From contig NC_068982.1 of NCBI RefSeq assembly GCF_001194135.2, forward strand, positions 40,957,876 to 41,021,875: 64,000 nucleotides of DNA. Reading direction: 5' to 3'. The translations under genes were made by a program, and so were the position numbers. The notes under the pieces are model-generated. The model saw only the letters and a program-made list of their open reading frames with translations, was not told the origin of the DNA and did not search any database. The stretch comes from Octopus bimaculoides (taxonomy: Eukaryota). Shown piece after piece: positions 28,301 through 31,300 of this stretch (positions are counted from its first letter, which is position 1; every line of letters starts with the position of its first letter).

Positions 28301-31300
28301 TCATCCAACCACTCAACATTTTTTCCCTTGCTCTTCCTCTCCAGTAAGTTCCATCCATTTCAATAATGAAAGCTACTTAAAATGAAATACAACTTTGCAC
28401 TATTTCACCCAACTACCATCCTTCATATGCATCACATCTATATACCAATGCAGTGTTTTCCTCTTCATATATCATATCTGATTACTCTTATGCCCAGTTG
28501 TTCTCTTAGGACATGTGCTCCATCATTCAAGTCCATTAAAATTACACATCTGGTTGTGAATATCAGGTTGGACAAAAGGGTCTGCTTTTGAGTTTTTTAA
28601 GCAAAAATATGACACAAGTTTTAAACACTAAGTAATTTATTCAATCAACAATGTAATCATTGTTTCATTCCAGTATCTTCTGAAATGTATCTTCCATTAT
28701 TCCCTGCTCAAAGAATTCCCTATGTTTACTGGTGAAAAAAACTCTTCTGGGTGAACTTTTACATCCTCTTCAGAGTTGAAGGTCTGTCTTTTCAATGAAT
28801 TTTGAAAAGATCAGATCAGATGGAAATCTGAAGGCACAAAGTCAGACAAATATGGAGGATGCAGCAAAATTTCCTAACCAAACCTCAGTAATTTCTGTTT
28901 CATCTACAAAGAAGTGTACAATCTAGCATTGTTGTGATATCCTATTTCATAGTCCTGTCTGTGAAAAAGACTGCACCCTTCCAATCCCACTGAATTGAAA
29001 GCATAACCTTCTTTGGATGAAGTTCTATTTTAGAGGTTGTTTGTCGTGATTTGCAGAGATCCCTCCTTGATCATCAGCACTTCACATTGCTACAAATGAT
29101 TCATTTTTTTCATCCCCTCTCACCATTCTCTTAAAAAAAAAAGGATCATTTCTTCACATTTCTGCAATGAATCATAGATGGAAATCCTTTCAGCAAGGTT
29201 AGCCTCAATCAATTCATGTGGAACCCAAACATCAAGCCTGCTGACATAACCAAGTTGATGCAGATGGTTTAACACCTAATTTGTATATTTGGAGAATATC
29301 TGCAATTATTCGGGTCATATAATGTGAGTTAGTGTCGACTAACTCCTTCAGTTCTGTCACTGTTGGTCTCAGTTGGCCAACCAGAGCAAGGTGCATCTTG
29401 AACCGCAAAATTTCCTGATCGAAATTTAGAAAAACACTTTTGACACATATTCCATAACAACATCCTCTCCATACATTGCACATATCTTCCTGCAGGTTTC
29501 TGTTGTTTTCTTGCCTTTTTAGAAATAAAAAAGCACGAGGTGTTGATAATGTTCATTTTGGCTCTCCATTTTTGGTGTTATCCCAAACACACAGAACACA
29601 GCCTCTCTCATTGCAAGTTCATGTTAAACTTAGTCGAAGTGTCAAGTATCTAATGAGAGTGCATGCACAACGAACACACTGTACTTAGCTACTTATTAGA
29701 GTGCTTGAGGTTTAGTGTTGACAAAAACCAAACAGACTTTGTGGCCAACCCAATACTTGCTGCCTTTCTCTCTAGCCTTCATACATTATTCACACTTAGA
29801 GAATATGTTTTGCTACCATACAATATATTTCATATATAAGCATCACATAATCTACTCTTCACTCAGAGAGAGAATTCCTTTGTTATTAGCAATGCTAATA
29901 GCTTCCTTGATTTTTTCCATCTTGTTCATATCTTATATACTATGTTTTCAGAATATACTTCTTAACTGTTAGTTATAAAAGAAGCTTTCACTTACTTCTA
30001 GAGAGCCTTCTGTGCAGTAGACAGTATATTTATTTCATAATCTTTTACTGCAAACTACCTGAGTACAGCAATTACATTGTGATGATAGTAACATAAAACA
30101 AGTGTAAAATAAACCTAGTAAAATAAAGATTATTGCGTTGTAAAAATCATGTGTTAATAGATGATTGGGTCATAAAACCTATATATAAAGAGTGGTGATA
30201 ATAATATAAAACACATATATAGCACAATATTTTTTTGTTTTATTCTTTTAACTATATCACTGACACACTATTCCAGTGAGAGTAGAGCAGGCATTGACCA
30301 GGTCATAGATGTGTTATGAAAGATTTTGATATTTTACACTATAAAGTAGAATCACGAAATAAAGCAACATAGTTTGTTCTAGGTGGCTGTTATGACACTG
30401 CTGTAATGCAGTTTAAGTTTCAGCACATGATCTCAAATTAAGCCATTTGCCATATGTATGTTACAAACCAAGTAGCTAGCTAGAAAATGTCTATAGAGAT
30501 GAAAGTAGTAACTATACTGAGAAGTAATGTTTATTGCCACTTCAATATGGCTGTTTGATAAGAATAGACACTACTACTATTTTTATCCCCAGGAGGAGCT
30601 TCTTCCAGCTGGTCATTGATGCAATCTGCATCCAATATATATTGCAAGCAGGGAAACAAACTCCTACAATCTTCTAGTAGACAACAGGACCACCAGACCA
30701 AACAGTTTCAAGCTATTCATGCTCATCCTCAGTGGTGGACATCCATCCACTAGAAATAGCAGTAATCCACTCCGGCTCATAATATATAACAAAAAATAAA
30801 TGAATAAATAAAATAAGTGACAACCAGTCACTGATCTCGCAACAAGCAAAGTAGCTAGTTAGAAGACCTCTATAAGAGATGGAAGTAATAACCATACTGA
30901 GAAGTAATGTTTATCACCACTTCAACATGGCTGGTCCATAGGAACCAATGTTGCTACTGTTGTTAAGCCCAAGAGGAGCCTCCTCCAGCTGGTTATTGAC
31001 GAAATCTGTGCCTGATATATATCGCAAGCAGGGGAACAAACCCCTACCTTGTTCAAGCAGATGACAAGACCACCAGACTGTACAGTTTCGAGCTATATAT
31101 GTTTATGTGCATATATTGAGGAAGCTACGATAAACACAAATTTATATCATTCATTCCTACAGATGTACATTTCCTCATTGTAGTTATTTAGAATCCTACA
31201 CTAGATGGTCCAAGTGCAATTGGATGCTTAACGATAATGAATCATCAGGGGACACTTTATTGCCTTACGTTACAGAGAACTACAATTTCCATAGGTATAC

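Follow-up and report, generated by a model that had tools for sequence, protein, structure and literature searches.

A 64,000-nucleotide window of the Octopus bimaculoides genome (contig NC_068982.1, positions 40,957,876 to 41,021,875) contains a 644-nt insertion on the minus strand at 30463-31106, made up of about 1.7 tandem units of a 380-nt non-coding repeat with a complete type I hammerhead ribozyme motif at the junction between units A and B. We consider it quite likely that this main locus is the fossil of an inserted small non-autonomous retroelement, one of the non-long terminal repeat (non-LTR) retrozyme type. An earlier sequence-only reading had proposed a 5'-truncated insertion of roughly 1.6 units of a non-autonomous hammerhead retroelement. 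That proposal is now strengthened by a second locus of the same family, a reconstructed ancestor with a canonical hammerhead, the predicted co-fold of two such ribozymes, and the lack of both an open reading frame (ORF) and any reverse transcriptase (RT) or GIY-YIG motif. Two independent loci are seen within 64 kb, and the family may be dispersed in multiple copies.

Seed-and-extend comparison recovered the tandem as two families of direct repeats, at offsets of 380 and 379 nt and with 78% and 82% ungapped identity. Units A and B were 78.8% identical over 250-255 aligned nt by blastn and alignment, so that the units at this locus are ~21% diverged. Tandem Repeats Finder did not report the 380-nt period of the insertion, which was detected by seed-and-extend and blastn, and an nhmmer profile built from three copies of the family matched the minus strand at 31109-30843 and 30786-30464. 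The C17 positions of the two GUC sites, 31076 and 30696, are separated by 380 nt and define a monomer at 30696-31075 on the minus strand with a GC content of 41%, compared with 39% for the whole insertion. The 5' truncation falls inside hammerhead loop 2, and the terminus at 30463 reads ...GGTTTGT. As had been claimed, the element has no ORF, the longest stop-free stretch being 65 amino acids at the main locus and 85 amino acids at the second locus.

The complete hammerhead at the A/B junction occupies 30690-30738 of the minus strand, with a cut expected after C30696. Reading in the 5' to 3' direction, the motif comprises the helix I 5' strand CCACCA (30738-30733), the core CUGAGGA (30732-30726), one extra U after A9 (30725), the helix II 5' strand GAGC (30724-30721), the loop AUGAAUA (30720-30714), the helix II 3' strand GCUU (30713-30710), GAAA (30709-30706) and C (30705), UGUUUG (30704-30699), GUC with C17 at 30696 (30698-30696), and the helix I 3' strand UGGUGG (30695-30690). 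All of the motif and repeat coordinates given in the earlier reading hold on the minus strand. The conserved core is complete between 30732 and 30696 (C3 U4 G5 A6 N7 G8 A9, G12 A13 A14, A15.1-U16.1 and H17). Helix I is open, with 6 bp and a distal extension, and helix II has 4 bp, closed by a G10.1-U11.1 wobble (GCUU) where unit A and the copy at the second locus, hereafter copy 3, keep C11.1. Helix III is weak, with 3 bp including one U-G pair, most of the helix having been lost. The motif had been called a minimal type I hammerhead; the type I assignment stands, and the 6-bp helix I with its long extension and the 4-bp helix II place it nearer the canonical metazoan form.

A hammerhead had also been described at each unit junction, which claims too much, since the whole motif is present at A/B alone. 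The upstream unit keeps the 3' half of a hammerhead (31070-31093, minus strand, through UGGUGG), with GCUC at 31093-31090, GAAA at 31089-31086, the palindromic stem III ACUGUACAGU at 31086-31077 and C17 at 31076, as the earlier reading had it, and lacks the CUGANGA box and the helix I 5' strand. An RNAmotif-style type I descriptor was applied that specified CUGANGA, 0-1 extra nucleotides, a helix II of 3 bp or more, GAAA, a helix III of 2 bp or more that ends in U, H17, and a helix I of 4 bp or more. Over the two strands of the window (128 kb of sequence) the descriptor matched only at the A/B junction. From 150 dinucleotide-preserving shuffles the chance expectation was 0.047 matches per window, or 0.02 with a 6-bp helix I.

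The second locus lies 11 kb from the first and has a head-to-head structure. Copy 3, at 41791-42090 of the plus strand, is a direct family copy (blastn, local alignment, nhmmer E = 1.5e-96). It is a single unit that begins ~50 nt upstream of its hammerhead and is 74-79% identical to units A and B. Adjacent to it at 41689-41790, on the minus strand, is an inverted 5'-truncated fragment of the 3' part of the unit (blastn; nhmmer E = 1.5e-25, model positions 206-308). The truncated 5' ends of the two arms are joined at 41790/41791 and their 3' ends face outward, at profile positions 305 and 308, ~15-18 positions from the end of unit B (323). Copy 3 carries a decayed hammerhead at 41838-41886 (plus strand) that reads CCAUCA-CUGAAGA-G-GAGC-ACAAAUA-GCAC-AAAAC-AGCACA-GUC-UGGUGG, with G12 changed to A; its helix II contains an A-A mismatch and its helix III is broken. 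Homology stops sharply at both loci, whose flanks are AT-, TA- and TG-rich and share no similarity with each other by blastn. Neither blastn nor the three-copy nhmmer profile found further family copies in the window. Some 20 nt past the point where copy 3 ends lies a 22-nt poly-T run (42113-42134), which may belong to the AT-rich target or represent the tail of an adjacent element on the opposite strand.

A majority-rule comparison of the three copies gave an ancestral sequence, GAGC...GCUC-GAAAC-UGUACA-GUC, that regains the G10.1-C11.1 pair, G12 and the 10-nt palindrome ACUGUACAGU. In this ancestor helix I spans 6 bp and helix II 4 bp, a single extra nucleotide follows A9, and helix III is palindromic. 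C11.1 and G12 together form a CpG (31090-31089, 30710-30709 and 41866-41867), so the ribozyme core has a built-in mutational hotspot. The CpG was lost twice independently, by C to T in unit B and by G to A in copy 3; both losses are CpG transitions, the usual form of CpG decay.

Folding predictions for the ancestor match the double-hammerhead arrangement. Two ancestral 70-nt ribozymes co-folded at -44.4 kcal/mol, compared with 2 x -18.4 kcal/mol for the monomers, into a structure in which both copies form their helix II hairpin, helix III is intermolecular and 10 bp long, and helix I pairs a 5' strand and a 3' strand contributed by different copies. At the A/B junction, the predicted distal extension of helix I pairs a 5' strand at 30739-30762 with a 3' strand at 30664-30689 (both minus strand; -18.7 kcal/mol, z = -4.2, 1 of 1000 shuffles as good), and copy 3 has a distal helix I of different sequence that is similarly stable (-19.4 kcal/mol, z = -3.4, 4 of 1000 shuffles as good). 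Direct reading of these two extensions found a U-A pair in one copy exchanged for C-G in the other, which, coming from two sequences, is no more than suggestive. The 380-nt monomer had a minimum free energy (MFE) of -113.7 kcal/mol, with z = -2.69 for the ribozyme strand versus z = -1.47 for its complement.

Several results weigh against a retrozyme origin. The MFE structure of the extant 105-nt region is not a hammerhead (-30.9 kcal/mol, versus -27.6 kcal/mol with the core held unpaired, and -22.4 kcal/mol for the explicit hammerhead structure of the extant A/B junction), and shuffles fold as well as the isolated 53-nt motif does (z = -0.24). Rfam hammerhead models gave no match, whether at the gathering score, with E<=10 on stretches of 1 kb and 91 nt, or with E<=1 over the whole window, where the sub-threshold Rfam matches were all microsatellite artefacts (mir-297, mir-466 and others). 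Two and a half ribozyme sequences were available for comparison, too few for a statistical covariation test, and an indel puts the distal helix I of the two complete ones out of register. Outside the window, an exact-pattern scan of metagenome contigs for the hammerhead signature was empty, a 25-position signature from the three copies had no exact match in metagenome, prokaryotic-genome or viral contigs, and six-frame stop-free translations, used as protein queries for miscalled ORFs in further copies, gave no score for any of 8000 candidates. Inside it there is no coding sequence of a Penelope-like element (PLE), with no YxDD or GIY-YIG motif in any frame. No target-site duplication was convincing either: at the main locus the one candidate (TATGTATGTT versus TATATATGTT) was weak and of low complexity, and none was found at the second.

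Because Rfam is silent and the 53-nt motif folds no better than its shuffles, we read the extant A/B sequence as a degraded example of a hammerhead. The same two observations could be taken to mean that the motif is a coincidence in an ordinary SINE-like or satellite-like dispersed repeat (SINE, short interspersed nuclear element) in which a ribozyme was never involved, and a chance rate of 0.02-0.05 per window, though small, is not negligible genome-wide. Against coincidence, the three-copy ancestor is a better hammerhead than every extant copy, and features independent of the descriptor, namely the G10.1-C11.1 pair and the palindromic helix III with its double-hammerhead co-fold, fit published metazoan hammerheads. 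The long helix I is conserved despite sequence change, and the repeat lacks a tRNA-, 5S-, 7SL- or U-RNA-like head. We therefore regard coincidence as very unlikely. A SINE identity was rejected separately, since ARAGORN found no tRNA in the element and Rfam found no small-RNA head of the tRNA, 5S, 7SL or U-RNA type.

The element instead has the features of a non-LTR retrozyme: a type I hammerhead within head-to-tail repeats of ~150-450 bp (here a 380-nt period and 1.7 units), no coding capacity, no LTR, primer-binding site (PBS) or polypurine tract (PPT), and low GC. Its 41% GC and its lack of an ORF and of a tRNA- or 5S-like head agree with how non-LTR retrozymes have been defined (PMC7229834). 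For such an element, tandem master copies would be transcribed into multimeric RNA in which adjacent hammerheads could pair through the palindromic helix III to form a double hammerhead. Each hammerhead would then cut after GUC, yielding 380-nt monomers with 5'-OH and 2',3'-cyclic phosphate ends that the host tRNA ligase RtcB could circularise. The RT/GIY-YIG endonuclease of a PLE would copy linear multimers or circles into AT-rich DNA, and the expected insertions would share a fixed 3' end, differ in how far they are truncated at the 5' end, and include partial tandems and, at times, inverted pairs lying head to head. We infer this sequence of transcription, cleavage, circularisation and PLE help from published work on the retrozyme class, and a PLE probably mobilised the present family.

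The two loci display the signature of PLE insertion, with a partial tandem, 5' truncation, an adjacent inverted 5'-truncated copy and an AT-rich target. PLE insertions have been described as partial tandems with an inverted 5'-truncated copy beside the upstream repeat (Craig et al. 2021, PMC8557442). The PLE enzyme cleaves and extends both DNA strands and favours AT-rich DNA (Frangieh et al. 2024, PMC11167929), behaviour that would produce the head-to-head geometry of the second locus, and reverse transcription begins at an internal site of a multi-copy RNA (PMC11167929). These parallels raise the alternative that both loci are remains of an autonomous PLE, as solo or arrayed pseudo-LTRs with a hammerhead, and do not belong to a separate retrozyme family. 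PLE pseudo-LTRs carry hammerheads (PMC4209133) and form partial tandems with inverted 5'-truncated copies (PMC8557442), vertebrate retrozymes have been reported as sequence relatives of PLE pseudo-LTRs (bioRxiv 10.64898/2026.07.22.740005), and the architecture at 41689-42090 is PLE-like. However, the units succeed one another with a period of 380 nt and without an intervening ORF, the homology at both loci has sharp ends, and the autonomous Penelope element with RT and GIY-YIG domains that the sequence-only reading had suggested looking for is missing from the 64-kb window by the motif search in all frames. On this evidence an autonomous PLE origin seems improbable.

A different question is whether the tandem was made in DNA, by unequal exchange or slippage after insertion of a single unit, and not from multimeric or circular RNA. 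Only a single junction is available, copy 3 is a single unit, and the segment between units has been observed once. This 55-nt segment (30787-30841, minus strand) is unique to the internal A/B junction and contains a hairpin, GUGAC-UGGUU-GUCAC (30831-30817), with an AT-rich stretch after it. Copy 3 does not have the segment, and unit B terminates just before the segment's would-be start. The 5-bp hairpin begins 11 nt past the point where the insertions end, and it might be the stem-loop of an internal PLE reverse-transcription start or a PLE 'tail'. Formation in DNA is opposed by the order of the units, a 5'-truncated unit followed by one with the normal 3' end, which is the geometry of target-primed reverse transcription on a multimer. 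It is also opposed by the Jukes-Cantor (JC) distances, which are 0.25 for A-B compared with 0.25 for A-copy 3 and 0.31 for B-copy 3. Since A and B are about as far from each other as either is from copy 3, the tandem appears to be as old as the dispersal of the family, and we judge an origin at the DNA level unlikely.

Pairwise JC distances across all copies span 0.21-0.34, with 0.34 between the two arms of the second locus, and by these values all copies appear about equally old. A published octopus calibration places JC 0.09 at ~25 million years (My) and 0.2 at ~56 My (PMC13282606), under which the copies would be, very roughly, ~30-50 My old, within the range of the Penelope and long interspersed nuclear element (LINE) expansion (PMC13282606). 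The main locus appears to be dead, with its upstream ribozyme truncated and its complete one lacking the G10.1-C11.1 pair and most of helix III. Without CUGANGA and the helix I 5' strand in the upstream unit, the site at 31076 should be uncleavable, so that at most one cut is predicted. Having only one complete and weakened ribozyme, the locus would therefore release neither a 380-nt monomer nor a circle.

The main insertion is located antisense within a 12.6-kb intron of a plus-strand gene encoding a CNH domain, a gene with canonical splice sites and very long introns. CNH-domain exons were found at 16325-16441, 20219-20383 and 24453-24557 and, covering the end of the domain, at 25127-25252 (all plus strand; Pfam CNH 1.6e-12), the last of them followed by a GTAAGT donor at 25253. 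The next conserved exon, at 37885-38096 (plus strand), has a TTTTAG acceptor (~37884) and a GTTTGT donor, and matched positions 3140-3481 of the orthologous JGI metagenome contig Ga0224511_10000102 collinearly (tblastn E = 3.5e-8). The last CNH exon shares 81% amino acid identity with the orthologue on that contig, and the exons are collinear. This contig, from another species, has only exons in common with the window and no copy of the element. The antisense intronic position described in the sequence-only reading, between the donor at 25253 and the acceptor at ~37884, is thus supported by exons collinear with an orthologue, while its GARNL3 label is unconfirmed, as a protein search with three CNH exons returned only short metagenome fragments. 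The type I descriptor found no hammerhead motif on the pre-mRNA strand. Because the ribozyme strand is antisense to the pre-mRNA, the host gene should be unaffected by this old, dead intronic repeat, an ordinary result for genome annotation.

Other repeats surround the two loci. Remnants of mariner/Tc1-like transposases were recognised by eye at 3183-3512 (minus), 13019-13351 (plus), 29310-29574 (minus) and 33674-33920 (minus); the fragment at 3183-3512 had no Pfam match at E<=0.01. A short dispersed repeat with many copies in both orientations and near-identical translations (9099-9215 minus, 9643-9789 plus, 14940-15281 minus, and elsewhere) is probably an abundant SINE-like host family. The window also contains 12 runs of N (for example 12176-12626 and 46879-47343), nearly all flanked by TG/TA/CA microsatellites, and such microsatellites gave rise to ~190 spurious sub-threshold Rfam matches (mir-297, mir-466, mir-3149 and similar).

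Cnidarians, mussels, amphibians and many other invertebrates are reported to have non-LTR retrozymes, examples being mussel Mg353, coral Amil224 and axolotl Ax330 and Ax353 (Cervera & de la Pena 2020, PMC7229834). The octopus element resembles them in its tandem non-coding units (170-400 nt in metazoan retrozymes and 350-390 nt in mussel, compared with 380 nt here), low GC (41%), self-paired monomer RNA, absence of LTRs, PBS, PPT and ORF, and type I hammerhead, in which helix I has 6 bp, helix II has 4 bp and helix III is palindromic. The coral element has ACAGUACUGU as its helix III and the mussel element ACGCGCGU, and the CUGAGGA core is also present in the axolotl retrozyme Ax330 (PMC7229834 supplement). 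The octopus element differs from metazoan non-LTR retrozymes in its extra nucleotide between A9 and G10.1 and its 7-nt loop 2, and it has no homology beyond chance with Mg353, Amil224 or Ax330. As it shares no sequence with the mussel, coral or axolotl retrozymes, it constitutes a distinct family. This family is represented here by only a decayed 1.7-mer and one further locus.

The comparison also extends to two other groups of hammerhead repeats. Features outside the strict core agree with published hammerheads, both metazoan type I and those of PLEs (Cervera & de la Pena 2014, PMC4209133): helix I of 6 bp, helix II of 4 bp, a single nucleotide separating A9 from G10.1, and a helix III that is palindromic. 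The octopus loci share with PLEs the partial tandem, 5' truncation, adjacent inverted 5'-truncated copy, AT-rich surroundings and fixed 3' end, but have no RT/GIY-YIG ORF in or near the element, and minimal PLE hammerheads have a helix I of 4-5 bp and a helix II of 7-8 bp in place of the 6 bp plus distal extension and the 4 bp seen here. Like Schistosoma Sm-alpha and newt satellite 2, the family consists of few-hundred-nt type I repeats, tandem or dispersed, with a short palindromic helix III. The last nucleotides of its loop 2 are AAUA, or AAAUA in copy 3 and in the majority consensus, as in the Schistosoma hammerhead, GUCC-CAAAUA-GGAC-GAAAC-GC-GUC (PMC5666329). Unlike these classical repeats, it has another repeat sequence and another helix II sequence and is not detected by Rfam models. 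The Rfam hammerhead models are seeded on classical members such as Schistosoma Sm-alpha and newt satellite 2.

Full-text literature searches returned no paper linking hammerheads or retrozymes to octopus or cephalopods. Craig et al. 2021 (PMC8557442) mention octopus only in connection with Naiad PLEs, a clade without canonical hammerheads. The octopus repeat is thus a new family of a known element type and involves no new mechanism. In animals, small circular RNAs (circRNAs) arise by a ribozyme-dependent route that starts from hammerhead tandem repeats; these repeats are now thought to be non-autonomous passengers of Penelope-like elements, and a family in a lineage with no earlier report would extend the map of hammerhead repeats. 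The second locus preserves an unusually clean PLE-type geometry in a 300-nt non-coding element and gives indirect support to the PLE-helper hypothesis. We tentatively raise the further possibility, which on balance we doubt, that intact tandem masters elsewhere in the octopus genome make abundant ~380-nt hammerhead-processed circRNAs and are mobilised by host Penelope elements; if so, they would be the first ribozyme-derived circRNA system described in cephalopods.

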